Positions 20,183 to 63,215 of a stretch of DNA of 64,000 nt are shown piece after piece. A model generated the notes under the pieces. The model was given only the letters and a program-made list of their open reading frames with translations. It had not been told where the DNA came from and did not search any database. The DNA is taken from IMG/VR virus record IMGVR_UViG_3300022745_000017, positions 1-64,000 of that record. One strand, 5' to 3'. Made by a program: the position numbers and the translations under genes. The stretch's first letter is position 1. The number at the start of each line of letters is the position of its first letter.

Positions 20183-21061
20183 ATGAAAGGAATTGAGGTG
20201 ACTCAATTATCATGGAATGGTGTTGCGGAGTTTACCGCAACAGCTGGGGAAGTCTTCCCCAGTCTTGAAGCCATTGGCACCAAGCTCGGTGCTATCAGCA
20301 TCCTCGCCGACCTGGTGCACCCAGAGGGCGAGGAGTCAATCTGGCAAGTCCAGATTGACGCACCCCAGGCTTCGTGGCATCCAGTGCGCAAGAGCTTGCC
20401 CAAAGCTCTGCGCGCCGCCGGATGGGCAAGCCTAACCACAGTACAGGGCGGTCCCGGCCGCACTGTACTGATCCTCACTTGCCTAGCCGGCAATGAGGAT
20501 CAGGGAGAGTCGCAAGACGCTCCTGTTGAAGTTTCCACCACCCCCACTGTTACCCAGGAGTCTACAATGTCCGCTGTTCCCACTTCCACCATCCCCGGCG
20601 TGAGCGCCGCCCCCACCACCGCCGCAGTGACCATCGAACAGCTGCTGGCGGCAGTCGCCGCTACCAACGCCAGCGTCGACACGCTGAGCAAAGCGGCTGC
20701 CTCCGCCCAAGCGGCGCAACTGGCACTGGGCCAGCGCGTCGACGCGCTGGCACCCGCCCTGCCCAAGGCCAGCGAGGCAGCCGCTGCTGCCGAGGCGGCT
20801 AACAAAGCAGCAGCAGCAGCGGCTGCTGCTGCTGCTGACGCAGCCGCCAAGGCCCTCAAGGCTGAGGCTGATCTGCAAGTGTTGACCGCCAAGGTCAACG
20901 CCCTGCCCGCCCCGAGTGCGGCCGGTGCCACCAAGTCCTCTACGGCTTCTGAAGACTGGACCACGGGCGAAATCGCAGTAGCGGTTGGCTGCACCTTGCT
21001 GCTCATTGGTGGTGTGTGGATGCTTGTGGACAAGTTCACAGGCAAAGCCACTCCGGTCTAA
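20183..21061 (+). CDS. hypothetical early protein with Ala-rich coiled coil and C-terminal transmembrane anchor; second in-frame start at 20567
   Basis: 292 aa; poly-Ala helix; hydrophobic IAVAVGCTLLLIGGVWMLV near the C-terminus; AGGAG-6nt-ATG at 20556-20569. Confidence 0.7.
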   Translation: MKGIEVTQLSWNGVAEFTATAGEVFPSLEAIGTKLGAISILADLVHPEGEESIWQVQIDAPQASWHPVRKSLPKALRAAGWASLTTVQGGPGRTVLILTCLAGNEDQGESQDAPVEVSTTPTVTQESTMSAVPTSTIPGVSAAPTTAAVTIEQLLAAVAATNASVDTLSKAAASAQAAQLALGQRVDALAPALPKASEAAAAAEAANKAAAAAAAAAADAAAKALKAEADLQVLTAKVNALPAPSAAGATKSSTASEDWTTGEIAVAVGCTLLLIGGVWMLVDKFTGKATPV

Positions 21062-21063
21062 CT

Positions 21064-21120
21064 GGTGAGGTGCCCTAGGGCACCTCACCTAGAAAACCCC
21101 TCACTGGGTTTTCTTTTTTT
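21064..21120 (+). terminator. 26-bp perfect palindrome followed by an intrinsic terminator
   Basis: ggtgaggtgccct|agggcacctcacc (21064-21089), then agaaaaccc-ctcact-gggttttct plus a T run. Confidence 0.75.
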
Positions 21121-23737: not shown

Positions 23738-25921
23738 TCAGGCCACGTAGTCCGACATACGGAACAGCGACAAGTCGACGGTAGCGGCCGTCTTCATGTT
23801 GTTGGCGTACACCTCGGTCAGCATGCTCCAGCTGTAGCCGCGCAGCTCATCTCCGTCAGAGATGTAGCAGTTGGGCTTGATCTGGAACAAACCAGCAAAG
23901 CGACCAAAGGTCTTGGCAGCAATGCGGCGGTTGGCTTCTTCCACCAGTTGGCCACCTGTGTAGCGAACAGCACCGGTGAGCTCGGCGTGCGTGCGCTCCA
24001 TCACCTTCTGGACTTCAGCACAAGCCATCACCACGAAGGCACTGGTCAGCGGAGAAGTTTCTTCGGCGTAGATGGTGCGAAAGCCCGGCATGTAGCACTT
24101 GGTGCGATCGGAGTCAAGCGGGAAGTTCATCCCTGCGGTCAACCAATCTTCCGTGCGAACATCCGTCGGTGTCCACGAGTTGCTGATCTTGCGGAAGCGC
24201 TTGAAGGTGTTGTTGGGCTGGATGTCGAACAGGTACTTGGAATTCCACTTACCGTTGGAAGCACCCATCATCTTCGCACACCACTCGACGACTTCGATCA
24301 CCAGGGGCAAGCGATGCGGGTACTCGCTGGAGATCAGCTCACCGCTGCGAGCCACCAAAATGCCACGCACGGCTTGAGTGCCGTAGTAGTCACTCTCGGG
24401 CAGCACTTGCAGCATGGTGCGCAAGCTAACTGCACGGGCTTTTTCGGTGTCCAGATCTGGGTCGGGGTCACCGACGATGATCGGAGTGCCGATGAAGTAC
24501 GTGTCCTTGCGCAGTGCAATGATGTTGGTCATCGCATTTTTGGTTTCCACCCCGAAGCCGGTGTCGATCAGGCAGGATTGATCGAAACGCGCACGGTTCA
24601 TGTACACATTCGTCGGATCAGCGTACTTCAGTGCTTCTTGCTTGACCAGGTAGTCAAAGACTTCCAGGTTCATGGTGCCGTCGTCACCACCAGAGAGCAT
24701 CATGTTGGTTTCGCTCGAAGGCATCACCGACCCACGGAAATCCGTTTCCAGAGCCACCGTGAAGTACGGCACCCCCTTGAACGACTTGGCAGTGAGCAAG
24801 TTGATCAGTGAGGCGTGGGTGTCGTCAGTGGCTGAGAAGTCTGTGTGGCGATAGCTGTTGTTGGTGTTGTATTGTGGGATTTCCGCAGCATCACCACCTT
24901 GGCCAAAAGCACGCTCAGTGTTGAACAAGATCCGTGTGACGGTCTGCACATTGTCGTGGTAGACAAAGACATCACCAATGTCACCGTAGATGATCGGGTC
25001 AGACTTGGTGCTATAGGCATCTGAGAAGATCTCGTCAGCACTGATTTTCACACCTGTGTCGCTATTGCGCTGATTCGGTTCCAAAGAGACCGTCAGACTG
25101 GTGCGCATGTCGCCAGTGGTCACCAACACCGGAGTGGTCGTCGGTTTGGCGCGGCGTACAAAGGCCATCTTGTAGAAAAATGCCTTGGAGTCGCGCAGCG
25201 TAGCCGATGTCGGGGCATCGACATCCGTGCTTTGGCAGGGCCACAAACGCACGCCACACTTGTTGTAGTGAGAGCCTTCGCCACGACCGACGATTTCCAT
25301 GATCGGATAACGCGTCGTGTCCTTGCCCGCCGGCTTGTGCCACTCGTTAGCGGGGCCACCGGCAGCCATGGTGTAGCTATCCAAATGACCAACTGGGCCG
25401 CTTGCAGTGCCGTCTTCCAAGTCATTGGTCACGACCCAGCGGATGTTGCGACCCATGGTCTTGACGGGGACGTTGTTACTATCCACCAGTGCCGTCGGAG
25501 TGGTCGTGGTGTACGTGCCATTGGTCTTGCGAGCGTACTGCTGGATGGGTGTTTGCTCAGAGACTTCAATCCACAGCACCATGCGAGCCAGTGCAGCGTT
25601 TGTGTAGCCCTTGTTCGTCATAGAAGCAGGCAGTTCTTTGGCTACCACGCGCTGCCACATCTGTGCGCAACCGGTGGCGTTGATCAGCCGGGCTGCCACG
25701 CTTTGGTGTGTGGCGTAATCGCTGCCGTCGTCAAAGACTTCAGTGCCAAAGTTGCTGGTGACTGCCGAGCCCACCATCGGGAAAGGCTCACCCGTCGGGC
25801 CCTTGGCCGCGAAGGTGAAGATGTGCGGGAAAAACGTCGGCACCGGCGGGGTTTCAGGCGGCAGGGTGCGAGCACCCAAGTCCTGAATACCGCGCGGGAT
25901 CGTCATCGGGGTAGAGTTCAT
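23738..25921 (-). CDS. tail sheath protein (phiKZ gp29-like)
   Basis: 727 aa; IQDLG and FAAKGP near the N-terminus, LSGGDDG, DTGF, C-terminal RGYSW...YANNMKT; GAGGA RBS; paired with the tube gene. Confidence 0.88.
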   Translation of the reverse strand: MNSTPMTIPRGIQDLGARTLPPETPPVPTFFPHIFTFAAKGPTGEPFPMVGSAVTSNFGTEVFDDGSDYATHQSVAARLINATGCAQMWQRVVAKELPASMTNKGYTNAALARMVLWIEVSEQTPIQQYARKTNGTYTTTTPTALVDSNNVPVKTMGRNIRWVVTNDLEDGTASGPVGHLDSYTMAAGGPANEWHKPAGKDTTRYPIMEIVGRGEGSHYNKCGVRLWPCQSTDVDAPTSATLRDSKAFFYKMAFVRRAKPTTTPVLVTTGDMRTSLTVSLEPNQRNSDTGVKISADEIFSDAYSTKSDPIIYGDIGDVFVYHDNVQTVTRILFNTERAFGQGGDAAEIPQYNTNNSYRHTDFSATDDTHASLINLLTAKSFKGVPYFTVALETDFRGSVMPSSETNMMLSGGDDGTMNLEVFDYLVKQEALKYADPTNVYMNRARFDQSCLIDTGFGVETKNAMTNIIALRKDTYFIGTPIIVGDPDPDLDTEKARAVSLRTMLQVLPESDYYGTQAVRGILVARSGELISSEYPHRLPLVIEVVEWCAKMMGASNGKWNSKYLFDIQPNNTFKRFRKISNSWTPTDVRTEDWLTAGMNFPLDSDRTKCYMPGFRTIYAEETSPLTSAFVVMACAEVQKVMERTHAELTGAVRYTGGQLVEEANRRIAAKTFGRFAGLFQIKPNCYISDGDELRGYSWSMLTEVYANNMKTAATVDLSLFRMSDYVA

Positions 25922-27823: not shown

Positions 27824-27871
27824 CTACTACAGTGGGCCTAAGCCCACTGTAGTAGTCAGCTTTCTTTTTTT
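27824..27871 (+). terminator. intrinsic terminator
   Basis: ctactacagtgggc-ctaa-gcccactgtagtag followed by a T tract. Confidence 0.75.
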
Positions 27872-27894
27872 TGTTATTAACCGAGTAAAAACAA

Positions 27895-38710: not shown

Positions 38711-40891
38711 ATGTCAGAAGTCATCGAAAATCCTTTTCAGTTGCAAACCCACGAGTATGTCCGTGACATCAATCCTCTCAAACACTATATCGAGAATCAA
38801 GCACTCGGTTTGAGCAAGATGCGCAACATCCCTTTAGACAAAGCTAAAGAGATCGTGGTCTCGATGCTAAAGCCCGGTGGTGTCTTTGAGTTTAAAGACC
38901 CGAAGATCGTTTATCTCCAGCGCAAAGAAAATGGAGACCGTGAAAAGCGTGAGTCTACATTTTTAGCTTATATCAAGGATTCTGTCAAAAAGCGTGAATT
39001 GATATCTCCGAGTCTGGCGACTTATCTCCATCCTGATGTTAAAGTCTCCTTGCTCTCGGAGTTCATGGACTTTGGCGTGGCCAAGCGCAATAGCGCCAAA
39101 CAAGCCCAGCATGAAGCAGAGGCGGTTGGCGATAAGTTCATGGCGGAGTTCAAGAAGTGCGAGCAAACTGGTGCTAAGCGTACAAACAACGCTGGCTCAG
39201 GAGCGCAGTGCACAGAGTCTACACCTTTGTTTAACCCGACTGCCCACTCGACACTGACTTCTAACTGTCGCTCTACAGCTGGTAACGGTAACGCTAATAA
39301 CGAAAAACTACTAGCTGGCAATCGTCACTATTGGTCAAGTGAAGTTGTAGTCAACAATATCATCTCCATTAGCATCTTGACAGACTTGCAAGCTGTTAGT
39401 GCTGTGATGAAGAAGTATAAGCTTCATGTGCCTAGTGTAGACGATGTCATGAAAGTGATTCGTTACTCGACGGACTTGTATTGGCGCAATGAGAGCAAGA
39501 TGGCTTTCATTCATGAGCTAGTCTCTAAGCTAGAGCCCGTTGAGCGCGCTGCGTTTGTGTATGTCAGTGACTTGTACCACTTGAGGCTTTTCAATGAAGC
39601 CTTTATGCGCAACTTCTTGTCTACCTTGGCAGCAAAGACATATGGTGACATCACTGATGAGGTCGCTTATGCGATCATCAAGTCAGCTAATGAAGACGTG
39701 CTTAACTTTGCTCAGCTGGTTTGTCGCAAAGAGACCATGGGGCATGGCAAGAAGCACTCTCAGATGGGCGAGCAAGCCAGAGCTATCTTGGCGAGCACGA
39801 TCAAAAACATCCAGTCTGTTATCAACGCGCACAGCGATCTGATACGTGCCTTTCTCACGACGCCCAATATGCCTGCGAGTATGGCGTATTTCCCGTCCAG
39901 TATTCGGCGTGTGGTGGTGACAGGTGATACTGACTCAACGATTTTCACCGTACAAGAGTGGGTGCTTTGGTTTAAGAACAAGGTTTGCTTCGATGACGAA
40001 GCTGTGTCTATCGCTACGGGGATGAGCTTTTTTGCCAGTGCGACAATCACACACTTGTTGGCCATCATGAGCTCGAACTACGGTGTGGTACAAAAGCGTC
40101 TGTACCAAATCGCTATGAAAAATGAGTTCTTCTATCCGATCTACCTGTTGACTCATTTGGGTAAACACTACGCTGCACTCATGGGCGCTAAAGAAGGCGC
40201 TGTTTACAAAGACATGGTGCTCGATATCAAGGGTGTGTATCTTAAGTCTTCTACCCTGCCTGAAGATATTCGTGTGCGGGCTGTGCAGATGATGAAAGAC
40301 ATCTTCAATGAGCTGATGGAAACAGGTGTGATCAGCATCATGAAGTACATTCGTCTTGTGACCAATGTAGAAAAGCTCATTGAGCACTCGATCGCTGCTG
40401 GTGAGTTCACTTACTTGCGAGCTGGTCAGATCAAAGACGCCGAGACTTACTCCAAGGAAGAAAGCAAGTCGCCTTTCCAGATGCACCATTTCTGGAACCA
40501 AGTCTTCGGTGAGAAGTATGGTGAAATGCCCCTACCCCCATATGACACCTTGAAGTTCTCACTGACTTGTAAGAACAGGACTGACACAAAGCGTTGGCTA
40601 GCCTCCATCGCAGATGAGAGTGTACGCAAGCGCCTTGAGACGTACATGGCTAAGAATGGTAAAACACATTTGACGACTCTGAACTTACCGACTGTCATGA
40701 TGATGAACACTGGTTTTCCTGTAGAGATTTTGCCTGTACTCGATATGCGCAAGATCGTTAAGGACATCAGTAAGATTTTCTACATTTTGATGGAAGTGTT
40801 AGGTGTATTTACCCAAGGCGAAAAGAAAGTAGATCGTTTGATTGGAGACATGTATCCCCTTGAAGAGATCGATCTGAAAATTGAACTATAG
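38711..40891 (+). CDS. split family-B DNA polymerase, polymerase (motif B/C) subunit (phiKZ gp50-like)
   Basis: Motif B-like QTGAKRTNNAGSG, motif C GDTDS, MKNEF, KHY, IKGVYLK; no exonuclease motifs seen. Confidence 0.88.
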   Translation: MSEVIENPFQLQTHEYVRDINPLKHYIENQALGLSKMRNIPLDKAKEIVVSMLKPGGVFEFKDPKIVYLQRKENGDREKRESTFLAYIKDSVKKRELISPSLATYLHPDVKVSLLSEFMDFGVAKRNSAKQAQHEAEAVGDKFMAEFKKCEQTGAKRTNNAGSGAQCTESTPLFNPTAHSTLTSNCRSTAGNGNANNEKLLAGNRHYWSSEVVVNNIISISILTDLQAVSAVMKKYKLHVPSVDDVMKVIRYSTDLYWRNESKMAFIHELVSKLEPVERAAFVYVSDLYHLRLFNEAFMRNFLSTLAAKTYGDITDEVAYAIIKSANEDVLNFAQLVCRKETMGHGKKHSQMGEQARAILASTIKNIQSVINAHSDLIRAFLTTPNMPASMAYFPSSIRRVVVTGDTDSTIFTVQEWVLWFKNKVCFDDEAVSIATGMSFFASATITHLLAIMSSNYGVVQKRLYQIAMKNEFFYPIYLLTHLGKHYAALMGAKEGAVYKDMVLDIKGVYLKSSTLPEDIRVRAVQMMKDIFNELMETGVISIMKYIRLVTNVEKLIEHSIAAGEFTYLRAGQIKDAETYSKEESKSPFQMHHFWNQVFGEKYGEMPLPPYDTLKFSLTCKNRTDTKRWLASIADESVRKRLETYMAKNGKTHLTTLNLPTVMMMNTGFPVEILPVLDMRKIVKDISKIFYILMEVLGVFTQGEKKVDRLIGDMYPLEEIDLKIEL

Positions 40892-42279: not shown

Positions 42280-44220
42280 ATGTCGACTCCCACTGGGATC
42301 AAAATCGGTGGCGCTTCCCCTTTGGTGCGCCCTGTAACCACCGCCCCTGCCGCTGCACCCGCAGCTCCTTCCTCCCCCGCCTACAGTAAGCGAGAAGATG
42401 CAATGGAAAAAGACAAAGACTTCGATCAGCGCGCCAACTGGCGCGCTAAAGCCATCAGCACCCCCAGCCAATCTGCGCAAGCCGGTGACCTGCTGGAGCT
42501 GACCCGCAAGGTCATGAGCGATTACAACATCCCTGGCTGCAAGCTCTCGGCCGAGCTGGTCTCTGGCACGACCTACGGCCTGCTGTTCTCGACGGTGGTG
42601 GTGCGCCTCTCTGCTGGCTCCAGCCATGCGGTGTACATGCTGGCTGCTGAAGGCAGCTTCGCCGATGGTCGCTACCCCGACGCTGTCGTCAAAGTGGCCA
42701 ACTCCGGCGAAGTAAGTGTGGCCCGTGGCCCGATGGACGCACTGGGCGGCAAGTATGCCAAGACTTTGACCGACCATGTCTTGGCTGGCCTGCCCCACGG
42801 TGACACCCTCATCTACGTGGGCAACACCTACGTCCCGCGTGAGTGGGATTGTGGCGCGGACACGAGCGTCAACGTGCGCACCAAGGTGGTTGGCCTGATC
42901 GTCAACGCCATCGCAGCGGTGGCCGCTGAGTTCACCGAGCAACGCGGCGAGCAGCCCATCAATTTGGCAACATGGTTGCAACCAGGTGAAATCCTGGAAG
43001 CCGCTGTTTCGTTCGGCAACGAACCTCGCCCCAATGCCCTCGGCGTGCCCACTCGCACCGATGTCATCATCGACCTGCGCACTGCGGTGACTGGTCGCAC
43101 AGCTGTGCGTGAACGCGACCGCGACGGGTTCGACTTCATGGACTTGAACACCACCAAGGGCGGCGGCACACTGGCGTCGATCGGTGGTTGGCTCCAAGCC
43201 GAATGGATGCCTGAAACGGGCGAGGTCGTGCGTGACTCCGAAGGCCGGATCTTGCCGCGCCCCTTGGCGGCTCGCTTGATCTTGAGCAACCTCGTCAGCA
43301 CCGAAGCCAAGTGCTTGTCCCTCACCACGTTGGCGGTGGCAACGGCAGCGGTAATGCGTCAAAGCAGCATCTGGTGGCATGGCTTCAAGCCGCGCTACAA
43401 TGCCACGCAAGCGGTGAAGGACGCCACGAACGTGGGCGCGCTGGATGTGCTGGTGAACCTGGCCGAACGGATGACGCCGCGTACCGCCATGGGTGACATC
43501 CCCTATGGCGAAGTGCAACGCCTGGGCAGCGACGCTGAGTGGGATTTCTTCATGAACGCCAGCTTTCAGCAACGTCTGGCCATCGGCTTGCTGGTGCCTG
43601 CGGCTGATCCCGAAAGCTGGGCCCTCGATCCTTTCCTGCGCTCAGCGCTGGGCGATCCCGACAGCGATGCCTTGATCGCAGGGTTGCTGAACTGGTTGAC
43701 CAACAACAAGTTCGCCGACTACTACGACGGTGGCTCGATCTGCCTACCCTACTCCGAGCAGGTGCAAACGGGCACCTACACCGGCAGTGATGGCATGCCA
43801 CGCCCCATCGAGGACGTTGACTTGACCGCCGTTTGCGCCCGCTTTGGCAAGCAGCAGCCTGACGGCATCGTGGCCTGGATGAACGCCGTCAACGACGCCA
43901 ACACGTCGTTTGCCCGCTCGGCAGCCAGCCGCGCGACGATCCGTGACACGGTGCTGGGTGTGCCCAGCAAGGTGCGTGGCACTGCCACCATCGTGATGCT
44001 GCGTGGCCATGTTCTGGACGCCGCACAACGTGCCATGGACGCCGCCAAGGTCAGCCCGCGTGTCATCGCTCCTGGCCTGGCTGCCATCGATCAGCGCCGT
44101 CAAGGTGCTCGCTGGGGTGATGCCTTGCTGGACAGCCGCACCTACGGGCGTGGTCGTGGTGGTGACGACGGTGGTGGCAGCACGCTGAGCCTGCGCAGTC
44201 GCGCCTTCCGCAACGCTTAA
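42280..44220 (+). CDS. chmA: chimallin, major phage nuclear shell protein (phiKZ gp54-like)
   Basis: 646 aa between the DNA pol/gp52-like genes and nvRNAP beta'N; disordered Pro/Ala N-terminus, GVPTRTD, GTYTGSDGMPRPIEDVD, RRQG...Gly/Arg C-tail; strong C/G codon bias; GAGGA RBS. Confidence 0.85.
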   Translation: MSTPTGIKIGGASPLVRPVTTAPAAAPAAPSSPAYSKREDAMEKDKDFDQRANWRAKAISTPSQSAQAGDLLELTRKVMSDYNIPGCKLSAELVSGTTYGLLFSTVVVRLSAGSSHAVYMLAAEGSFADGRYPDAVVKVANSGEVSVARGPMDALGGKYAKTLTDHVLAGLPHGDTLIYVGNTYVPREWDCGADTSVNVRTKVVGLIVNAIAAVAAEFTEQRGEQPINLATWLQPGEILEAAVSFGNEPRPNALGVPTRTDVIIDLRTAVTGRTAVRERDRDGFDFMDLNTTKGGGTLASIGGWLQAEWMPETGEVVRDSEGRILPRPLAARLILSNLVSTEAKCLSLTTLAVATAAVMRQSSIWWHGFKPRYNATQAVKDATNVGALDVLVNLAERMTPRTAMGDIPYGEVQRLGSDAEWDFFMNASFQQRLAIGLLVPAADPESWALDPFLRSALGDPDSDALIAGLLNWLTNNKFADYYDGGSICLPYSEQVQTGTYTGSDGMPRPIEDVDLTAVCARFGKQQPDGIVAWMNAVNDANTSFARSAASRATIRDTVLGVPSKVRGTATIVMLRGHVLDAAQRAMDAAKVSPRVIAPGLAAIDQRRQGARWGDALLDSRTYGRGRGGDDGGGSTLSLRSRAFRNA

Positions 44221-55288: not shown

Positions 55289-55388
55289 AAGTTTGCTTTC
55301 TCAAGAGGGTTATAAATACCAAAGCAGCGTCAGTCATATATCATCAACATGGGCCTCGCTGATGGCTCTATCTTTTACGGAAAAACAC

Positions 55389-57524
55389 ATGTTAGATCCC
55401 AAGTACGCTAAACTTTTTCCACAACCCAAGCCAGCTACTCCTTATGACCTGAGCTTGATTTACCCCAATCAGCTCAACAATGCTTGGATGGGCGTGTGTG
55501 GCCTACAGCCTTTTGTAGGTAATGTGTCCTCATCACGGCTCCAAATGGAGTCCCAGCACATTGGGCAGTGTTTACCCATTGAAGGCGCTGATGAGCGCAT
55601 GATTCAGACCACACTAGATAAAGAGTATGCAAAGTATTCTTTCAGTGTGAGCATGCCGGAGAATGGTCGCATCTTGAAGATTTTCAAGAAGTACCCTTCT
55701 TCTGGGCTTGCGGCGGACTCCATCCAGCACAACCCGCTGACAACGGTGATTTACGAGTCTGAAGAAGGTGAGATTGGATACTTTAACTTAACGGACTACC
55801 GCAGCGAGCATCAGTATTTTGGATTTCGCTACGAAGCTGGCGCTGAGTTGTCCAATCTGGCCCCTGACCGCGACTTCAAGAAAGGTGATGTGTTCTTGAA
55901 GTCCCCACTCGTGTCTAAGCGCGGTGGTTGGAAGTTCGGTGTGACAGCCAACATGGCTCTGTTTAGCCACCCAGGCACAGCTGAAGACTCGGTGTTGGTG
56001 CGTGCTGGGTTTTTGAAGAAGATGCGATTCAAGATGTTTCGCCAACGCGTCTTCGAATATGGCAAGACAGCGTTTCCGAAGAACTTGTACGGCAAGAATG
56101 GGCGCTTTAAGTTCATGCCTGACATCGGTGAGAAGGTCGCTGAGCATGGCTATTTGTGTGCACTAGGGCAGCATGACGAAGGACACTTGTCGTTCGTTGA
56201 GCAAAGCACGCAAGCCATGGCAACGATCGATGAGTTTGATGAAACTGTGTTCGTTGGCCCAGGTGGTACAGTGGTGGATGTGCAAGTCTTCCACGACATG
56301 AAGGACGACAAGAACATTCAACCGGAAATGGATGAGCAGGCGCTGAAGTACTACCTGGCTGGTAAGCGCTACTATCAGAGTATTTACGATTATTACAAGC
56401 GCTTGCGTGCAGCACGCGGAGATGGCTTGCGCATGACGGATGCGTTCCATCACCTGATCGTAGAAGCGATGTCGGTCATCACTCCGACAAAGGCCAGGCT
56501 GATTCACCGTCGCACTCCGATCGATCGGTTTCGCATCGTCGTCACTGTCGAGTATGACATCGAGCCCAACATCGGTTTTAAGATGGCTGGTCTCAGCGGC
56601 GATAAGTCGATCATGTGTAAGATCGTGGCCGATGAAGACATGCCTGTCGACGAACACGGCAATGTGGCTGACTTCATCTCATCTGAAGACTCTACCGTGG
56701 GTCGTAACAACTCGTCACGTATCTACGAGCAGTTTGTTGGATCGGTTCAGGTACAACTTCACCGCGAGATATGTCAAGCGCTAGGGATAACTCCCAAGAC
56801 AGTGTTTGCACGAGCTGTCAAGCACCTGCAACAAGTCGATCAGTCGATCATTGATGAGGTTTGGGCGACACTCATTCGCTTTTACACGATTACCCGACAA
56901 GAAACAGCGCAAGCGGCTCTGAATACACCGAATGTGCGCAACTTCTTGGCGACCATCGTAGCCTACGGAGTCAACCTGATCTGGCCTACTGATAACGAGG
57001 TCGATAACCCGTTGATGGCGCTGGAGTTGGAGCGTGAGTTCAGGCCACTGCATGCCCCCATCTCTTACCGAGTGGAAGGCAGAGCTGTCAGAACCCTGCT
57101 GCCTATTCGCATTGGCCCGATGTATATCATCTTGCTTGAAAAGATCGGCGATGACTGGTCAGCGTGTTCTAGTACGAAGACACACTACCACGGCGTCCCT
57201 GCTCAAACGAGCATGGGTGACAAGTACCGCAACCCAGCGCGCGAAACACCTGTGCGTGCAACCGGTGAAGCCGAGGTCCGATTGCTTGTGAGCTACACAG
57301 GCCCTGAATCGGCGGCTGAGCAAATTGACAGAAACTCTAACCCCCAGACCCATGCGCTCATTACCAGAGGTTTGTTTGAAGCTGAAAAAGTCGGCAACAT
57401 CGGACAATTGGTAGATCGCAACAAGCACCCATATGGCGGAGCTAAGTCGCTTCAGATGGCTCACCACTACAACCTGTGCATGGGTTGGGAATTTGCCTAT
57501 AGAAAGGCCACTGTAACATGCTAA
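55389..57524 (+). CDS. non-virion RNA polymerase beta subunit, C-terminal part (phiKZ gp71-73-like)
   Basis: NVSSSRLQM, TAEDS, GFKMAGLSGDKS, LLEK, RATGEAE; likely start 55389 after the promoter-like motif at 55333. Confidence 0.9.
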   Translation: MLDPKYAKLFPQPKPATPYDLSLIYPNQLNNAWMGVCGLQPFVGNVSSSRLQMESQHIGQCLPIEGADERMIQTTLDKEYAKYSFSVSMPENGRILKIFKKYPSSGLAADSIQHNPLTTVIYESEEGEIGYFNLTDYRSEHQYFGFRYEAGAELSNLAPDRDFKKGDVFLKSPLVSKRGGWKFGVTANMALFSHPGTAEDSVLVRAGFLKKMRFKMFRQRVFEYGKTAFPKNLYGKNGRFKFMPDIGEKVAEHGYLCALGQHDEGHLSFVEQSTQAMATIDEFDETVFVGPGGTVVDVQVFHDMKDDKNIQPEMDEQALKYYLAGKRYYQSIYDYYKRLRAARGDGLRMTDAFHHLIVEAMSVITPTKARLIHRRTPIDRFRIVVTVEYDIEPNIGFKMAGLSGDKSIMCKIVADEDMPVDEHGNVADFISSEDSTVGRNNSSRIYEQFVGSVQVQLHREICQALGITPKTVFARAVKHLQQVDQSIIDEVWATLIRFYTITRQETAQAALNTPNVRNFLATIVAYGVNLIWPTDNEVDNPLMALELEREFRPLHAPISYRVEGRAVRTLLPIRIGPMYIILLEKIGDDWSACSSTKTHYHGVPAQTSMGDKYRNPARETPVRATGEAEVRLLVSYTGPESAAEQIDRNSNPQTHALITRGLFEAEKVGNIGQLVDRNKHPYGGAKSLQMAHHYNLCMGWEFAYRKATVTC

Positions 57525-59560
57525 TGCGATTTGATGCCAGAACAATTCGCGGGATCGCTCCCACTGCACTGTGGAAAAAGATTGAAGGCGACATGGAAGT
57601 CGTTTGCAGTGACGGGGCGGTCGCTTGCACTGGACGTGATACCATCTGGACACGTTTTACGTGGGATCTTCTACGTGGGTTTGAAGAAACACCCATCACG
57701 AAGATGATGCACTTGAGAGGCTTTAGCAAGCCTTACACCGAGATCGATAACAACACCCACACCAAACTGTTGGGACATCTGTTGTTCGGGATCTACGATA
57801 GTTATGCGAGTCGTGTCAATGACCGCATGAAGATGGTAGATCATCTCAAGAGGCAGGCTTACGTCATCACCAACGTCATGTACAACTGGTTTTCTGTCCA
57901 GATACCTGAGTACGTGAGCTCGATTGACTTACTCGACTTTTTAGAGTGCTGTCAGTTTGAGCCAATTCGGCAGTCGATGATCAGTATCCAGCCTACGCCC
58001 GCTAGTATCGCTAACTGCCATGCCACGATTCGTAACGCACTCAACACAGCACCGGAGCTGCGTTACAATTCACTGGCTCGTGCAGTGCGTGGCAAGACAG
58101 TTCGTGTCGACCAGGTACTCCAAGCAATTGGTCCCGTTGGCTATCGCACAGAGACAGATTCTTCTGTGTTTCCGGCCCCGATCTTAACGGGATTCTTTCA
58201 CGGAGTACGCTTAATCGCTTGGTCAGCTATGGAGTCAAGGTCTTCAGCGAAGTCCTTATCGTTTACAAAGACTCCACTACAGCAAGCTGAGTATTTCTCC
58301 AGGCGTCAGCAGCTCGTTTGTTTGAATGTTTGGCGCATCCACCGTGGTGACTGTGGCTCGACTCAGTATTTGACCTGGCATGTCAAAGGCCCAGAGATCA
58401 ATGCTGAAGGCAAAGCCGTTGGCAATAGTGATCTGGATGCACTTGACGGGAAGTACTTCGTCAATGCTTCGGGTGGCTTGTCAGTCATTCGTCCCTGGAA
58501 CAAAGAGCTGATCAATACGACGATTAAAATCCGTTGCATTGTCGCTGGTTGTGCTCACCCCGATCCAAACGGTGTGTGTGAAGTCTGCTACGGTGAGACT
58601 TCACTAGGGATTGATGATGGTACAAACGGTGGGCACCAGTCATGTGTTACCATGACAGCGCCTGTCTCACAGATCGTGATCTCTAACAAGCACTTTGACG
58701 GCAGTGCAGTGGTGAGCTCGATTGTGCTATCCTTGTTTGAGAAGAAGTACTTGTCTGCCCCGTCAGGTGGTAGTCTGTACTACTTACAGCAAGACCTCAA
58801 GAACCGCAAAGTCAAGATTCGCTTGTGCGCTGATGAAGCGCCTGGGCTACCTGACGTGTTCACCATCGACGATGTGAACCTGTTGAGCGCCAGCCGGGTG
58901 AGTGAGATCTCCAGCTTGCGCTTGGTGGTGTGGGACAAATCTGGTAACCCGGAAGAAATCCCTCTCAACACAACGGTTGATAAGAATGCGTCTAACATGA
59001 CGCACCAACTACTTGCTCACATCAAGAAGGTTGGCTTCGAAGTGGCAGAAGGTGGCTACTACCAAGTCGATATGGCTGGGTGGGATTATAGCCAACCGAT
59101 TCTGTCGCTGCCGATGCGTCAAGTCAACATGGGTGACCACCAAGCCGAAATCGCTGGCTTGCTGGAGTCTACAGTAAGTGACTTGGAAAAGCGCTCCAAT
59201 GTGGTTTCTCCCGAAGCCCTGTTGGCTGAGCTGTTCAACCTCATCAACCGTGGTCGACTACTGGTGAACATGGCTGTGCTTGACCTCATCGTCTACAGCT
59301 CTATGGTGATCAGCAACTCCAAAGCTGACTACCGTTTGCCCAAGCCTTGGACGACAAAGGAGCTAGGCATTTTAAGGCACAACATGGAAGGTCGCTCAGC
59401 AGGAGCAGCATGTGCTTTTGAGCGCCATCAGACGTACTTGACTGACCCTAAACAGTTTGTCAATACAGATCTGCGCCCAGATCACCCGATGGACGCACTC
59501 TTGCTGCCTGAACAGGTGCTCGGTGGTAAGTACGGCCGGTTTTACGCTGACGTGGACTAA
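57518..59560 (+). CDS. non-virion RNA polymerase beta' C-terminal subunit (phiKZ gp74-like)
   Basis: Bridge-helix-like EYFSRRQQLV, GDCGS, Zn site GVCEVCYG, ISNKH. Confidence 0.88.
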   Translation: MLMRFDARTIRGIAPTALWKKIEGDMEVVCSDGAVACTGRDTIWTRFTWDLLRGFEETPITKMMHLRGFSKPYTEIDNNTHTKLLGHLLFGIYDSYASRVNDRMKMVDHLKRQAYVITNVMYNWFSVQIPEYVSSIDLLDFLECCQFEPIRQSMISIQPTPASIANCHATIRNALNTAPELRYNSLARAVRGKTVRVDQVLQAIGPVGYRTETDSSVFPAPILTGFFHGVRLIAWSAMESRSSAKSLSFTKTPLQQAEYFSRRQQLVCLNVWRIHRGDCGSTQYLTWHVKGPEINAEGKAVGNSDLDALDGKYFVNASGGLSVIRPWNKELINTTIKIRCIVAGCAHPDPNGVCEVCYGETSLGIDDGTNGGHQSCVTMTAPVSQIVISNKHFDGSAVVSSIVLSLFEKKYLSAPSGGSLYYLQQDLKNRKVKIRLCADEAPGLPDVFTIDDVNLLSASRVSEISSLRLVVWDKSGNPEEIPLNTTVDKNASNMTHQLLAHIKKVGFEVAEGGYYQVDMAGWDYSQPILSLPMRQVNMGDHQAEIAGLLESTVSDLEKRSNVVSPEALLAELFNLINRGRLLVNMAVLDLIVYSSMVISNSKADYRLPKPWTTKELGILRHNMEGRSAGAACAFERHQTYLTDPKQFVNTDLRPDHPMDALLLPEQVLGGKYGRFYADVD

Positions 59561-59617: not shown

Positions 59618-59685
59618 TTATCTTTTGACTATGTCCGCCGGCATTTATTTCAAAATGAGTGCCTCTAACTACAAGCAGGTACATC

Positions 59686-61221
59686 ATGATTGCAATGGAA
59701 ATCCAGGAGAAGTCTCACAACTTCACTGTTAAGATAAAATCACCTGAAGAAAGAAAGATTTGTTACGCGTTTAGCCGAGACTTTATTGAGTACGACTTGC
59801 AGCGCAAGGGCGGTAACTACGTTCGGCAAATGAAGCGCGTGTATGCCACGTCTAACAGTGGACATACTGAGTTTAGATTCATGCAGTCAACTCTGCCTGA
59901 CTTCCTGAAGTTTTTGAAGAATCACGGCTACACGGAAGGTAAAGACTACAAGTTTACACCTTGTGAGCTTTATGAGCCTGCTGCTGCTAAATTTACGGTG
60001 TTTGATAAATGGACAGACTTACCTGATCAAAAGCCGATCTTAGACAAGCTCCATGTGCCGCAACCTGTCACAAAACCGAGCCGTGTTTTGATCACGGTTC
60101 AAACAGGCAAGGGCAAGACTTACACAGCTCTGAGGGAGTTGAGTAAAAGAAACCACAGATGGATCAACATCTGTAAGCCCGCTTACATGGAGAAGTGGTG
60201 GGAGGATATCAAGAAGACTTACGACATGGACATGAACCGTGTGCTCATGGTCGCGGGCAGTAAGTCACTCAAAGCGCTACTCCAACTCGATGCAGAAGGC
60301 CAGGCCGATTGGGATATCGCTATCGTTAGCACCAAGACCATGCTCAATTGGTTAAAAGAGTATGAAGAACTTGGTAAAGACACGCTCGATCTTGGCTATG
60401 CATGTTTGCCAGAGAACTTCTTCGAACACCTCAAGGCAGGTACACGCCTTAACGACGAAGTCCACTTAGAGCTGCACTTTCAGATCAAGCTCGATTGCTA
60501 CACGCATGTGCCTAACAGCATTTCTTTGTCTGCGACTTACTCTAATGACAACCCGTTCTTAGAGCGCATGATGAAGCTGGCGTACCCCATCAGCACCCGG
60601 CTTAAAGACATCCAGATCGACAAGTACGCTGACGCCTACCCTGTGTTTTATAAGGCGTCAGATAGTCGGCATTTGCGCACGACGGAGCTCAACAGCAACA
60701 ACTACAGCCACATCGCTTTTGAGAAAAGCATCATGCGCCACAAACAGTGGCGAGAGAACTATCTCAGGATGATTGGTGATATTGTTCAAAATACTTACAT
60801 TGGCTTAACCAGGCCAAAGAAAGTAGCTGCCGTTTTTGCAGCCAGTATCGCCATGTGTACATTGCTTAAAGAGTATCTCTCTCAGCGCTTTCCAGACAAA
60901 GTGGTTAAGCGTTACGTGGAAGATGACTCTGTCGACAATGTCTACTCATGTGACATTTTAGTGACCACTGTGCTATCGGCTGGTACGGCGCTAGACATCC
61001 CGGACTTGGTAGCGGTTTACCTCACGATCGCTATCAACTCGACCCAGGCAAACATCCAGACGTTTGGCCGGCTGCGCAAACTGGCTGACCACAAGACAGA
61101 GTTTTACTACTTCGTCTGTATGGATGTCGCTAAGCACTGCGAGTACCACGACAACAAGCTCAAGATGTTGAAAGTCAGAGCCAAGAGCGTGCGAGAATAT
61201 CACTCCGGCGTTACCATTTAA
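59686..61221 (+). CDS. superfamily 2 (DExH) helicase (phiKZ gp75-like)
   Basis: Walker A QTGKGKT, DEVH, SLSAT, GTALDIP, QTFGRLR; likely start 59686. Confidence 0.9.
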   Translation: MIAMEIQEKSHNFTVKIKSPEERKICYAFSRDFIEYDLQRKGGNYVRQMKRVYATSNSGHTEFRFMQSTLPDFLKFLKNHGYTEGKDYKFTPCELYEPAAAKFTVFDKWTDLPDQKPILDKLHVPQPVTKPSRVLITVQTGKGKTYTALRELSKRNHRWINICKPAYMEKWWEDIKKTYDMDMNRVLMVAGSKSLKALLQLDAEGQADWDIAIVSTKTMLNWLKEYEELGKDTLDLGYACLPENFFEHLKAGTRLNDEVHLELHFQIKLDCYTHVPNSISLSATYSNDNPFLERMMKLAYPISTRLKDIQIDKYADAYPVFYKASDSRHLRTTELNSNNYSHIAFEKSIMRHKQWRENYLRMIGDIVQNTYIGLTRPKKVAAVFAASIAMCTLLKEYLSQRFPDKVVKRYVEDDSVDNVYSCDILVTTVLSAGTALDIPDLVAVYLTIAINSTQANIQTFGRLRKLADHKTEFYYFVCMDVAKHCEYHDNKLKMLKVRAKSVREYHSGVTI

Positions 61222-61284: not shown

Positions 61285-61794
61285 TTAGGACTCTAAGTCC
61301 TTCATTGAGTCTTTCAAGTTGTCTAAGACCTCTCTGCCTTTTGCCTCTTTTGAAGACATGATCTTGTCGCACACCGCGATCATCTTTTCGACGACTTCAG
61401 GGGGGCAGTTGATGAAGTCCAAAAAGCTGATGTTGTAGAGTTCACCGATCTTTTTGTTTGGGAAAACATCCAGTAGTTTGAACAGCTGGCTGTGTTCGGT
61501 GTACTCTTCAGCAGGGTGTATCTCGAACGAAGCAAAGGGTCGTTTCAAGCTTGGGTCGACGGCGGGATTATCATCCAGGGCTTCTTGCTGAATGTGATCG
61601 AAGATGCCGTAACGTGTGTTGTAAGCATCTCCGAGTAACTTCCTAGCTTCTGCCCAGGTTTTAATCCGATCGCCTTGTAGCAAGATCTCTATAACGCTCT
61701 CTCCGGTAGCTTCTACCCCGAAGTCGACGTTACAGATGTGATTGACCCTTACCGGGTCTCCTTGATGATTTTTGCTTTCTGCCCCAGGAGGGTA
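61285..61794 (-). CDS. T-like C-terminal extension reached by -1 frameshift from 61749-63215 (phiKZ gp76-like)
   Basis: Frame open from 61827 to 61285, with no ATG/GTG/TTG until the TTG at 61683. It is the -1 frame of the upstream gene at T TTT TTT. C-terminal YNISFLDFINCP. Confidence 0.65.
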   Translation of the reverse strand, partial: YPPGAESKNHQGDPVRVNHICNVDFGVEATGESVIEILLQGDRIKTWAEARKLLGDAYNTRYGIFDHIQQEALDDNPAVDPSLKRPFASFEIHPAEEYTEHSQLFKLLDVFPNKKIGELYNISFLDFINCPPEVVEKMIAVCDKIMSSKEAKGREVLDNLKDSMKDLES

Positions 61795-63215
61795 AAAAAA
61801 GCTTTCGTCGCATCCACCGGAATGACATCAGCCCAGCGCGGAGATGCGTCGGTGATCTTTTCCACACCGCCGCAAGAAGGGCACTTGTAGGCATTCACAC
61901 CGATGATGGCGATCGTGGAGTCGTCGATGAACTTGCCGACTTCCGTGGTGAAAGCCTTGCGCAACTCATCATCACAGCTCAAGCGTCCCAGGGTTTCTTC
62001 GATCGCTTCTTGTTGCTCTTTCTCGCACGTCGCACGCACTTCACCATCCACCAAGATCGCTTCCACGAAGTGCGCGTATTGACGCATTGCCGTGGCTTTG
62101 GCTTGATCGAAGAGGTAATCGTTGCGGGTTTGTGTGTCCGCGATCAGCGCTTCCGTGTAAGCCTTTTCCAGCTCACTGACCCAGCGGTAGCCGCTGTCGG
62201 CGTAGTCCTGGATGGTGCAGATGCGCAGTTGCAGACCAATGCCTGTGTCCTGACCCAAGCTGATGATGCGGGGTTGGCCACGCAGGAACTCCTTTTGGTA
62301 AGACTTCAAGTCTTCTACCGTGACGGAGTTGTAAGTGCGGCGAGCCAGTTGAGCACACTGACGCTTGGTGAGCGCTGTCAGATCGATCTGGTGCATGCGC
62401 TGCGGGAACATCTTACCTGTCGAGACGTGTGTGCATTTGTCGGGATCGACTGTACAGGCTCGACTGTATTTCACGCCATTGGGCCAAGTCGCTGCGGCAA
62501 TGGCAGTCACCAAGGCATCATGATCAAGCAGCTTGATGTGGCTCATCAGTGTTTCCACCGGGACATTCAAGGTAGACTCCTTGATATGTCGCATGATGAA
62601 TCGCATCACTTCTGCACTGAAGTAAGAGCGCACATTGGAGAAGATCGCCCCAAAGGTTTGGCGACCCAGCGTAGCGCGCTCTTCGACGATCAGGCGATGC
62701 AGCTCCAGCAGCTCACCTTCAGTGGCTGGCAAGATCGAGACACAAAAGCCCGAATGAGGCAGGGGTGTCCACTTGGGCGTGCCCAGGCCCAGGCGCTTGG
62801 TGACGATGTCAGCCAGTTGTACTGAGCCAGTCCCACCTGAGGTGTTGACACTGCGCATCTGGATGAGGTCGCCTTCGTACTCGATCTCTTGCCGCCAGTC
62901 GCTGTTTTTGTCTTCAGCCGATTTGACGAATCGGTCGGCGTGGGTGGTGGTGTAGGAGCCGTTGTTAACAGCACTGATCCATTCCCGCCCATCCTGCGTC
63001 CGCCCGAGCTTTTCGAGCAAAGCGGTGTTGCCCAGGAGCACACGGTAGCGCGTTTCAGAGGTCGTGGGAATAAAAAGCGTTTCAAAGCCCTTGACACCCT
63101 TGACATCATCGGAAAACAGTGGCGTCTTCGTGCTCCAGGTGATGTTCTTTCCTTCGGCGATGGGCGGTGTATCGTCGCCAGTGGGCACAGTGTTGGTATC
63201 GGTTTGATTGTTCAT
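61749..63215 (-). CDS. putative tail/baseplate-hub assembly chaperone (phiKZ gp77-like; G-like)
   Basis: 488 aa, AGGAG RBS; PLPHSGF, CTVDPDKC, YKCPSCG; ends KAFFTLL over a slippery T7 run. Confidence 0.65.
   Translation of the reverse strand: MNNQTDTNTVPTGDDTPPIAEGKNITWSTKTPLFSDDVKGVKGFETLFIPTTSETRYRVLLGNTALLEKLGRTQDGREWISAVNNGSYTTTHADRFVKSAEDKNSDWRQEIEYEGDLIQMRSVNTSGGTGSVQLADIVTKRLGLGTPKWTPLPHSGFCVSILPATEGELLELHRLIVEERATLGRQTFGAIFSNVRSYFSAEVMRFIMRHIKESTLNVPVETLMSHIKLLDHDALVTAIAAATWPNGVKYSRACTVDPDKCTHVSTGKMFPQRMHQIDLTALTKRQCAQLARRTYNSVTVEDLKSYQKEFLRGQPRIISLGQDTGIGLQLRICTIQDYADSGYRWVSELEKAYTEALIADTQTRNDYLFDQAKATAMRQYAHFVEAILVDGEVRATCEKEQQEAIEETLGRLSCDDELRKAFTTEVGKFIDDSTIAIIGVNAYKCPSCGGVEKITDASPRWADVIPVDATKAFFTLLGQKAKIIKETR
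61794..61800 (-). other. putative -1 ribosomal frameshift slippery heptamer U UUU UUU
   Basis: GCT TTT TTT ACC in frame 0 fits X XXY YYZ; the -1 frame is open for 169 codons. Confidence 0.7.

Follow-up and report, generated by a model that had tools for sequence, protein, structure and literature searches.

Lambda gpG/gpGT-type tail assembly chaperones, along with the P2 E/E+E' and Mu-like equivalents, are produced by a programmed -1 frameshift in tail morphogenesis genes, wherein a slippery heptamer near the end of the upstream ORF gives a major short form and a minor long form that share their N-terminal part (about 100-140 aa), often without a strong RNA stimulator. These proteins are assembly factors absent from the virion, and their layout, with the gene pair between the tail tube and tape-measure genes, is conserved across very divergent phages while their sequences are not. 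A second set of tail morphogenesis factors, the T4 baseplate hub assembly proteins gp51 and gp26, are both members of the Pfam family PF12322 (T4_baseplate; gp26 and gp51 score 216 and 178 bits, respectively); gp51 is non-structural, and gene 26 carries a second annotated product, 26', arising from an internal start. In bacterial -1 frameshift signals of the dnaX and IS-element type, the X_XXY_YYZ heptamer is combined with an upstream SD-like element and a downstream hairpin.

We examined a 64,000-nucleotide stretch (hereinafter the window) of the metagenome-assembled viral contig IMGVR_UViG_3300022745_000017, in which a 488-aa minus-strand gene homologous to phiKZ gp77 carries a run of seven T's close to its end. 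Comparison with related loci indicates that this run is a conserved slippery site, which very likely allows ribosomes to slip back by one base and make a second, 643-residue version of a likely baseplate-assembly protein, a possibility missed in genome annotations, including that of phiKZ. We found no published description of this frameshift, and none of the 24 annotated phage records examined joins the two ORFs.

Anatomy of the overlapping reading frames

The first-pass annotation had reported a perfect heptamer in a GCT TTT TTT ACC context, a -1 frame open from a TGA shortly before it, and the absence of an ATG or GTG start, and these sequence observations are confirmed. The relevant codons are 472-475 of the gene, and the -1 frame runs for 180 codons without a stop (CHSGGCDESFFYPPGAESKNHQGDPVRVNHICNVDFG...). 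Between the shift site and the first conserved motif this frame has neither ATG nor GTG, and its first ATG lies 138 codons after the shift site. A slip would give a protein of 474 + 169 = 643 aa with the junction ...KAFF followed by YPPGAESK, as had been proposed; in phiKZ the corresponding junction would be ...FPHLIPIDMLSTFF followed by YFGGLEVK. The T run is the only A/T homopolymer of 7 or more inside a long ORF in the window, the other two being intergenic.

Features of the gp77-like locus and other elements of the window (strand given where recorded)
Feature	Coordinates	Strand	Description
0-frame gene	61749..63215	-	488 aa, encodes the short isoform; homolog of phiKZ gp77 (Chimalliviridae core gene cg18; phrog_4585, E 4.6e-93; tblastn to PHIKZ077, E 4e-45); AlphaFold2 model pLDDT 91.9
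Slippery heptamer	61794..61800	-	U_UUU_UUU: last base of Ala472, then Phe473 and Phe474; proposed site of the -1 slip
Trans-frame (-1) segment	61285..61794	-	169 codons plus TAA stop (61287-61285); C-terminal extension of the 643-aa long isoform; phrog_12109; corresponds to phiKZ 076.4, RAY gp266 and Goslar 00082, all annotated too short or with a wrong start; predicted all-helical fold, pLDDT 68
Dual-coding overlap	61749..61793	-	0 frame: TLLGQKAKIIKETR plus stop, a conserved amphipathic C-terminus of the short isoform; -1 frame: YPPGAESKNHQGDPV
H-x5-FG motif	61717..61740	-	HICNVDFG in the -1 frame, upstream of the first possible start codon
TGA	61828..61830	-	Closes the -1 frame 9 codons before the heptamer
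TTG	61681..61683	-	First canonical start in the -1 frame, 38 codons after the shift site and inside conserved coding sequence; very probably not the real N-terminus
Cysteine span	61872..62456	-	Four near-invariant cysteines: C254 and C261 (62456-62433) and C445-P-x-C448 (61883-61872); probable zinc site
AAGGAG	61763-61758		Strong AAGGAG just before the 0-frame stop
Helicase gene	59659-61221		Neighbor
RNA-polymerase subunit genes	55293-59560		Neighbors
Chimallin homolog	42280-44217		
Tail sheath gene	23741-25921		
Tape-measure-like ORF	2107-10614		
T8 run	27865		Intergenic
T7 run	21114		Intergenic

The assignment of the window to a nucleus-forming chimallivirus, made in the first-pass annotation, is supported by the chimallin homolog. 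Megablast of the locus against phage genomes found no match, with only protein-level relatives being recovered: tblastn finds 209 phage records, and the homologs include RAY gp267 and Goslar gp081, the counterparts of phiKZ gp77 among the cg18 proteins. A search for related loci with the single window protein returned only the source contig.

Conservation of the T run and alternative routes to the downstream frame

The conservation of an in-phase heptamer among relatives, and of amino acids upstream of the annotated downstream start, had been named in advance as the test of the frameshift, and we accordingly compared 36 homologous loci (phiKZ, PhiPA3, RAY, Goslar, Ralstonia, Vibrio, Salmonella, and Bacillus phages, plus metagenomes; L-numbers below designate individual loci of this set). 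An in-phase T_TTT_TTN heptamer is present at this position in 32 of the 36, against 5.2 expected from each gene's own codon usage, with a maximum of 17 in 200,000 simulations, although the loci share ancestry and the counts are hence not fully independent. The heptamer is kept even in genes that otherwise avoid TTT (L033, with 66% GC, uses TTT for 5% of its Phe codons, and RTH11 for 0%) and where the encoded amino acids differ, as in the V-F-L (GTT TTT TTA/G) of AgentSmith and pEa54. The four deviating loci are PhiPA3, FLC9, and Noxifer, with G_TTT_TTY, and pVa-21, with only CTT_TTT_A. RTH11 initially appeared exceptional in that its upstream frame is off by one; however, its close relative LucasX has T8 where RTH11 has T7, indicating that the RTH11 record is probably one T short.

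The -1 frame is open from the run to the end of a 149-175-aa extension in all 35 loci that are complete downstream, and this segment shows conserved motifs (H-x5-FG, AY..GI.DH, PL...H..E) starting 3-31 residues after the site. In most relatives the frame opens only 2-22 codons before the run, and in L026 and L028 a -1-frame TAA directly abuts TTTTTTT, such that the frame can only be entered at the run. The 0-frame tail after the run is likewise conserved across loci (e.g., TLLQQKTEIIRVTR, TLAVQKIRRIESR, and TLLAQRVAIISRR). None of the 150 best representatives of a 1331-cluster family extends more than about 30 aa past the FF motif, i.e., no in-frame fusions were seen. The loci of all roughly 1300 family representatives were not scanned for the heptamer. 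The possibility that a one-base homopolymer error or a recent frameshift mutation has split a single 640-aa gene was considered, given the metagenomic origin of the contig, the error-prone nature of homopolymers, and the one-base discrepancy in RTH11. It is effectively refuted by the occurrence of the same two-frame layout in all 35 other loci from independent isolates, assemblies, and sequencing technologies, together with the absence of fusions and the conserved 0-frame tail.

A further alternative is that of two separate genes, with the downstream ORF being translated from the TTG, from a non-canonical start such as ATC or ATA, or by termination-reinitiation after the 0-frame stop, and the T run merely reflecting the Phe-Phe motif. 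Indeed, every GenBank record examined annotates two genes, the window has a strong AAGGAG before the 0-frame stop, RP31 has an ATGA stop-start overlap, RTH11 has GAGGAGG followed by GTG, and PhiPA3 and Viktualia have an ATG just before the FG motif. However, no start codon follows the AAGGAG of the window in any frame, and 21 of the 31 loci tabulated have no ATG, GTG, or TTG between the shift site and the H-x5-FG motif (the latter identified in an alignment of 31 trans-frame segments). The first start is at codon 137 of 161 in L030 and at codon 86 of 165 in phiKZ, and in the window the phrog_12109 homology begins 21 codons upstream of the TTG. Moreover, the -1 frame always reaches back to the T run, the T at the preceding wobble position plus TTT is kept against codon bias, the annotated starts are inconsistent (giving products of 74-183 aa), and gene callers skip the ORF entirely in L028 and L030. 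We therefore regard independent translation as improbable.

Transcriptional slippage, wherein the phage or host RNA polymerase stutters on the run and adds one U to a fraction of the transcripts, would yield the same 643-aa fusion. In its favor, a homopolymer of 6-8 T's is present in 34 of the 36 loci, no ribosomal stimulator was detected, chimalliviruses use their own unusual multisubunit RNA polymerases, encoded next door, whose slippage behavior is unknown, and the RTH11 record differs from LucasX by one T in this run. Sites of this type usually have a homopolymer of 8-9 or more whose length rather than phase is conserved, and runs of 6-7 are short for efficient polymerase slippage. Here the runs range from 5 to 8, most commonly 7, while it is the X_XXY_YYZ pattern that stays constant: YongXC32, L029, L033, and L034 have only six T's but a perfect T_TTT_TTC, which fits ribosomal slippage better, and extra T's are always added on the 5' side, at the wobble of the preceding codon, as needed for a heptamer but not for a mere run. 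The phase argument is weakened by the conserved Phe-Phe dipeptide, which itself fixes part of the run and its phase. These observations leave slippage by the phage polymerase an undecided, if unlikely, alternative.

The short complementary blocks downstream of the site, suggested in the first-pass annotation as a possible stimulatory structure, are not convincing as such. The 60 nt after the site fold with z = -1.1 in the window, and the mean z over 31 loci is -0.5 with no common hairpin. In the window alone, a 111-nt fold has z = -2.6, but it pairs the U run itself with the downstream AGAAAGC and is not a canonical stimulator. No conserved upstream SD-like element (anti-SD complementarity) was found, and Rfam gave no relevant match or frameshift element. 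Such elements are common but not obligatory at -1 frameshift sites; in their absence the efficiency may be low.

Predicted fold and possible function of the two proposed isoforms

A Foldseek search of BFVD with the confident model of the 488-aa protein recovered seven entries named baseplate hub assembly protein (bacteriophage T4-like), baseplate hub subunit, or baseplate protein, with E-values from 7e-5 to 9e-3, probabilities of 0.99-1.0, and target TM-scores of 0.44-0.54 over 304-375 columns. This supports, at the fold level, the earlier suggestion of a resemblance to T4 gp26/gp51, with the caveat that both sides of the comparison are predicted structures; Foldseek against the PDB gave nothing with E below 1. 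The four cysteines are near-invariant in a 104-sequence alignment, and T4 gp26 and gp51 have the same kind of two Cys pairs. At the sequence level, there is no PF12322 hit, even at E up to 10, for the window protein or nine homologs (ten diverse members of the 104). An hhalign comparison of the family profile with a gp51 profile gives 57% probability and E 1e-4 over only 30 columns around CPxCG, and 30% against single gp26, which does not settle a sequence relationship either way. Profile searches of the PDB gave nothing for the body and two insignificant hits for the extension, namely FAP385 (E 0.24) and Tli4_C (E 0.39). Word-index searches with the downstream piece and with its profile returned only 2 and 5 proteins, respectively; the alignment behind the extension model was therefore shallow and the model only moderately confident, and its BFVD hits are just its own mis-annotated family. 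The structure of the full trans-frame 643-aa protein, and of its complexes with the hub and tape-measure proteins, was not predicted.

Published data provide indirect evidence on function. gp77 is not mentioned in the phiKZ structural atlas of 40 virion proteins (PMC13250141). In the phiKZ Tn-seq supplement of PMC12676376, PHIKZ077 and PHIKZ076.4 have 0 insertions in one table and 16 and 2 sites in the other, whereas the neighbors 076 to 076.3 carry hundreds to thousands of reads. On the other hand, the Churi homolog of gp77 was listed among proteins detected early in infection (PMC11849849), which is unexpected for a tail-assembly factor. A requirement for hub assembly was not assayed here.

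Given these observations, we propose that a fraction of the ribosomes reaching U_UUU_UUU on the gp77/cg18-family mRNA slip one base backwards, with tRNA-Phe in both the P and A sites re-pairing perfectly. Ribosomes that do not slip would finish after 14 more codons to give the 488-aa protein, and those that slip would continue for 169 codons to give the 643-aa protein with a helical C-terminal extension. We hold this reading at a probability of roughly 0.75. The sequence anatomy and its conservation are what the analysis demonstrates, whereas the slip itself, the isoform ratio, and the function are inferred: protein products were not observed, and no junction peptide, Western blot, or reporter data were found in the papers searched. 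Both forms appear to be needed, since the 0-frame tail and the -1 extension are both conserved and the two frames are not fused in any of the 150 representatives. The signal seems to be the heptamer alone, so the long form is probably the minor product. By fold, the shared body is a distant relative of the T4 gp51/gp26 baseplate hub assembly proteins, and it is not reported among virion structure components; the most likely role is therefore that of a non-structural assembly factor for the baseplate hub or tail initiation, working in two isoforms as lambda G/GT do. The first-pass interpretation is thus supported in part, namely for the frameshift and its isoforms, the chimallivirus assignment, and the T4-like fold, but not for membership in the G/GT chaperones; a chaperone function is inferred, not shown.

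If correct, every phiKZ-like jumbo phage, including phiKZ, PhiPA3, 201phi2-1 relatives, RAY, Goslar, and SPN3US-like phages, makes an essential protein of about 640 aa that no annotation lists, affecting at least 209 GenBank genomes and a family of more than 1300 sequence clusters. The arbitrary starts of the downstream ORF, or its omission, would explain why we did not find it (RAY gp266) in the Chimalliviridae core-gene tables. It would also offer a concrete handle on how the very large phiKZ baseplate and tail is initiated, and a clean natural U_UUU_UUN signal, apparently without a stimulator, for studying frameshifting in Pseudomonas and other hosts. A more speculative and rather doubtful, though not excluded, possibility is that hub-assembly proteins of the gp26/gp51 fold generally have to act as two C-terminally different versions, achieved in T4 by two paralogous genes plus the internal start of 26' and in phiKZ-like phages by one gene and a -1 frameshift. 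In this view, the long gp77 isoform would be the missing functional counterpart of gpGT in Chimalliviridae, coupling the giant tape-measure-like protein to the hub or tube, and an unrecognized essential protein of every nucleus-forming phage.

Comparison with described recoding and hub-assembly systems

With the lambda-type chaperones the locus shares, at the level of gene anatomy and conservation, a slippery heptamer near the end of the upstream ORF and short and long forms with a common N-terminal part. However, there is no sequence or fold homology, with no chaperone hit in Pfam or PHROG and BFVD entries annotated as tail assembly chaperones matching only at E above 1, and the shared part is 474 aa rather than about 130 aa. 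The gene lies in a conserved block with a helicase, RNA-polymerase subunits, and a head protein gene, a gp78-like ORF being among its neighbors. This is about 36 kb from the tail sheath gene and about 51 kb from the tape-measure-like gene, not between the tube and tape-measure genes, in line with the unusual separation of about 50 kb remarked upon in the first-pass annotation.

With respect to the dnaX and IS-element signals, the X_XXY_YYZ heptamer read by bacterial ribosomes is common to both, but neither of their stimulatory elements is conserved here. The T4 gp51/gp26 proteins share the predicted fold and the two cysteine pairs, including a CPxCG that hhalign aligns, and T4 gene 26 provides a precedent for a hub-assembly gene making two products. 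The window protein is, however, about twice as long, and its second product would arise by frameshifting into a new frame rather than by internal in-frame initiation, while T4 uses two paralogous genes. If the proposed slip occurs, the principle of two isoforms by -1 frameshift in tail morphogenesis would extend from the small G/GT chaperones to an unrelated family with the gp51/gp26 fold.

The T-run and the two overlapping frames

The minus-strand ORF encodes a protein of 488 aa, whose codons 472-475 read GCT TTT TTT ACC, such that the seven Ts constitute T_TTT_TTT in the 0 frame. The -1 frame is closed by a TGA upstream of the run and then stays open for 180 codons up to a TAA, with its first ATG, GTG, or TTG being a TTG 38 codons after the run. 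A -1 slip would join residues 1-474 to 169 further residues, giving a product of 643 aa with the junction KAFF/YPPGAESK. The first-pass annotation, which had described this arrangement from the sequence alone, is right in all its coordinates, and its observation holds. The run is the only A/T homopolymer of 7 or more that lies inside a long ORF in the whole 64-kb window; the only two others in the window are both intergenic and are probably terminator or promoter tracts.

The 488-aa protein matches phrog_4585 (E = 4.6e-93) over profile positions 73-539 of 551, indicating that the family ends where this protein ends, whereas the stop-to-stop -1 translation matches phrog_12109 from its residue 28 onward, i.e., 21 codons upstream of the TTG. 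A tblastn search recovered the 488-aa protein in 209 phage genomes, including PHIKZ077, and gp77 is listed as the core gene cg18, 'hypothetical protein', of the Chimalliviridae (Cell Rep 2023, PMC10299810 supplement). The window is part of a 218-kb contig (IMGVR_UViG_3300022745_000017) and encodes a chimallin homolog, a phiKZ-type sheath, a divergent family-B DNA polymerase, split RNA-polymerase subunits, and a tape-measure-like or tail-fibre-like ORF with a lysozyme domain. It is therefore a chimallivirus, as the first-pass annotation had assumed.

Coordinates of the features of the gp77-like locus, of landmarks elsewhere in the window, and of related loci
Feature	Sequence	Position	Strand	Remark
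0-frame ORF	window	63215..61749	-	488 aa; gp77-like
T7 run	window	61800-61794	-	T_TTT_TTT in the 0 frame
TGA	window	61830-61828	-	closes the -1 frame
TAA	window	61287-61285	-	ends the -1 frame
TTG	window	61683	-	first ATG, GTG, or TTG of the -1 frame
AAGGAG	window	61758-61763	-	strong Shine-Dalgarno-like; 6 nt before the 0-frame stop codon
Minimum-free-energy fold	window	61700-61810	-	z = -2.6
T7 run	window	21114-21120	+	intergenic; after the ORF ending at 21061
T8 run	window	27865-27872	+	intergenic; before the ORF starting at 27895
Tape-measure-like or tail-fibre-like ORF	window	2107-10614	-	2835 aa; lysozyme (endolysin-type) domain at residues 2414-2512
Tail sheath	window	23741-25921	-	phiKZ gp29-type
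Family-B DNA polymerase	window	38711-40888	+	divergent
Chimallin homolog	window	42280-44217	+	PF25677, 43.5 bits
T7 run	Xanthomonas phage RTH11 (OQ790161.1), locus L001	2501-2507		upstream gene annotated as a 627-aa ORF
T8 run	LucasX, locus L051	2489-2496		close relative of RTH11
PHIKZ076.4	phiKZ (NC_004629), locus L005	2784-3299		annotated as 80 aa
Genes 26 and 26'	T4, locus L037	7803-8429		gp26 matches PF12322 end to end

Conservation of the heptamer and of the downstream frame

An alignment of related loci for an in-frame heptamer and for conservation upstream of the annotated downstream start had been named with the first-pass annotation as the check on a programmed frameshift, with absence of the site, or the presence of stops or independent initiation signals in relatives, counting against it. 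The first sign from this comparison was that tblastn with the stop-to-stop -1 translation hit Ralstonia, Xanthomonas, Erwinia, and Bacillus phages from query residue 3-10, that is, from the T-run itself, across two annotated genes. We then collected 36 homologous loci, comprising the window, 23 cultured phages, and 12 metagenomic relatives with 28-62% identity. Of these, 32 of 36 have T_TTT_TTN in the 0-frame phase at the homologous position, three (PhiPA3, FLC9, and Noxifer) have G_TTT_TTY, and one (pVa-21) has only CTT_TTT_A. The run is 6-8 Ts long in 34 of the 36 loci and 5 in Noxifer and pVa-21. In all 35 loci that are complete downstream, the -1 frame runs open from the site through 149-175 codons.

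The heptamer is retained where the amino acids change, as in AgentSmith and pEa54, which have V-F-L encoded as GTT TTT TTA/G, and also in GC-rich genes that otherwise shun TTT, viz., the homologous locus L033 (66% GC, 5% TTT) and RTH11 (0% TTT elsewhere in the gene). From the codon usage of each gene, 5.2 perfect heptamers would be expected as against the 32 seen, and none of 200,000 simulations exceeded 17. The loci are related, but at 20-40% protein identity their synonymous sites are saturated. In the RTH11 record, which has T7 where its close relative LucasX has T8, the upstream gene consequently runs into a wrong frame; this is probably a one-base homopolymer under-call, or else a natural length variant of the slippery run. 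The gp77-like gene with the same T7/T8 heptamer and -1 extension also occurs in a 200-kb Bacillus phage (AgentSmith, MW749006.1) and a 167-kb marine phage (Halocynthia phage JM-2012); hence, the recoding may be older than, or wider than, the Chimalliviridae, although the presence of chimallin in these two phages was not examined.

The downstream frame is coding from the run onward and mostly cannot initiate on its own. The 31 trans-frame segments align, with conserved motifs (H-x5-FG, L..AY..GI.DH, and PL...H..E) beginning 3-31 residues after the site, and 21 of the 31 loci have no ATG, GTG, or TTG between the site and the FG motif. In the homologous locus L030 the first start is codon 137 of 161, and in phiKZ it is codon 86 of 165, with the annotated PHIKZ076.4 being the 80-aa remnant from that ATG, even though the open -1 frame with conserved sequence extends 86 codons further upstream to the T-run inside PHIKZ077. 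In two further homologous loci, L026 and L028, a -1-frame TAA directly abuts TTTTTTT, such that the frame can only be entered within the run. Annotators chose inconsistent starts: RAY gp266 starts at an ATG inside gp267, and AgentSmith_12 and pEaSNUABM54_00304 are remnants of 77 aa and 75 aa, respectively; gene callers skipped the ORF in L028 and L030. In the window, no ATG, GTG, or TTG in any frame follows the AAGGAG that lies before the 0-frame stop codon; this element is not conserved in the closest relative (locus L024), and its significance is unknown.

The 0-frame tail after the run (TLLGQKAKIIKETR and its relatives) is also conserved. Among the 150 best representatives of a 1331-cluster family, none continues more than about 30 residues past the FF motif, and no in-frame fusions were found among them. 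Both products therefore seem to be selected, which is the signature of programmed recoding rather than of error or decay.

Inferred mechanism and predicted function of the two proposed isoforms

The conserved quantity is the X_XXY_YYZ pattern and not the run length: four loci have only six Ts but an exact T_TTT_TTC, and the extra T is always supplied by the wobble base of the preceding codon. This favors tandem tRNA slippage on the ribosome over RNA-polymerase stuttering. However, the conserved Phe-Phe dipeptide partly confounds the phase argument, and we accordingly retain transcriptional slippage as an unlikely but live alternative. No conserved downstream hairpin was found (mean z = -0.5 over 31 loci and -1.1 in the window), nor was a conserved upstream SD-like element or an Rfam element. 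The short complementary blocks that the first-pass annotation had put forward as a possible stimulatory structure are not supported as a stimulator. The minimum-free-energy fold, seen in the window only, pairs the U-run itself (GCUUUUU) with AGAAAGC 14 nt downstream, within the conserved Gln-Lys codons (GQKA); this is not a canonical stimulator, and we have no explanation for it or for any effect that it might have on slippage. A heptamer-only signal suggests that the long form is the minor product.

AlphaFold2 with a 104-sequence alignment yielded a confident model of the 488-aa protein (pLDDT 91.9, pTM 0.91), which has no match in the PDB either by sequence profile or by fold. Against BFVD, the model first recovers its own family (E from 1e-35 to 1e-17), followed by proteins of 226-312 aa annotated as 'Baseplate hub assembly protein, bacteriophage T4-like', 'Baseplate hub subunit', or 'Baseplate protein' (E = 7e-5 to 9e-3; probability 0.99-1.0; target TM-scores 0.44-0.54). 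T4 gp26 and gp51 both belong to Pfam PF12322, but at the sequence level the link is weak, as there is no Pfam hit and hhalign reaches only 57% probability over 30 columns centered on the shared CPxCG. We therefore term the protein a distant structural relative, rather than a member, of PF12322. The extension is predicted to be all-helical (pLDDT 68), with only its last 70 residues or so being confident, and it matches nothing but its own family.

In terms of context, gp77 is not mentioned in the 40-protein phiKZ structural atlas (PMC13250141), and the names gp81 and gp82, assumed from the Goslar locus tags 00081/00082, do not occur in the Goslar virion paper. In a phiKZ transposon screen (PMC12676376 supplement), PHIKZ077 and PHIKZ076.4 carry no insertions in one table and 16 and 2 sites, respectively, in the other, while 076 to 076.3 carry many. 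In a discordant note, the Churi homolog was among the proteins detected early in infection (PMC11849849).

Taken together, the arrangement of the two frames is confirmed directly by the sequences, whereas the recoding itself is inferred from their conservation, and the minor status of the long form and the role of the protein are likewise inferences. Recoding to a 643-aa isoform, by ribosomal or transcriptional slippage, is very likely, and ribosomal -1 frameshifting specifically is likely (probability of about 0.75), although neither a junction peptide nor a Western blot is as yet at hand; a role as a baseplate-hub assembly factor is plausible. The interpretation of the locus in the first-pass annotation as a frameshifted G/GT-like chaperone pair is supported in part. 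The finding is of real interest to jumbo-phage biology and to genome annotation.

Comparison with known two-isoform systems

We found no paper reporting this frameshift, with literature searches on frameshifting in phiKZ, gp77, the Chimalliviridae, and jumbo phages returning nothing relevant, and none of the 24 annotated phage records joins the two ORFs. In its proposed operation the system works like lambda G/GT, with short and long isoforms produced by a -1 slip in a tail-morphogenesis factor. However, it is not a member of that family, as there is no homology, the shared part is 474 aa, and it lies in a different genomic neighborhood. Its nearest relatives by fold are T4 gp51 and gp26, which are paralogs that both match PF12322 end to end. 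T4 gene 26 also carries an annotated second product, 26', albeit one arising by internal initiation, and this is a possible parallel to the two isoforms proposed here.
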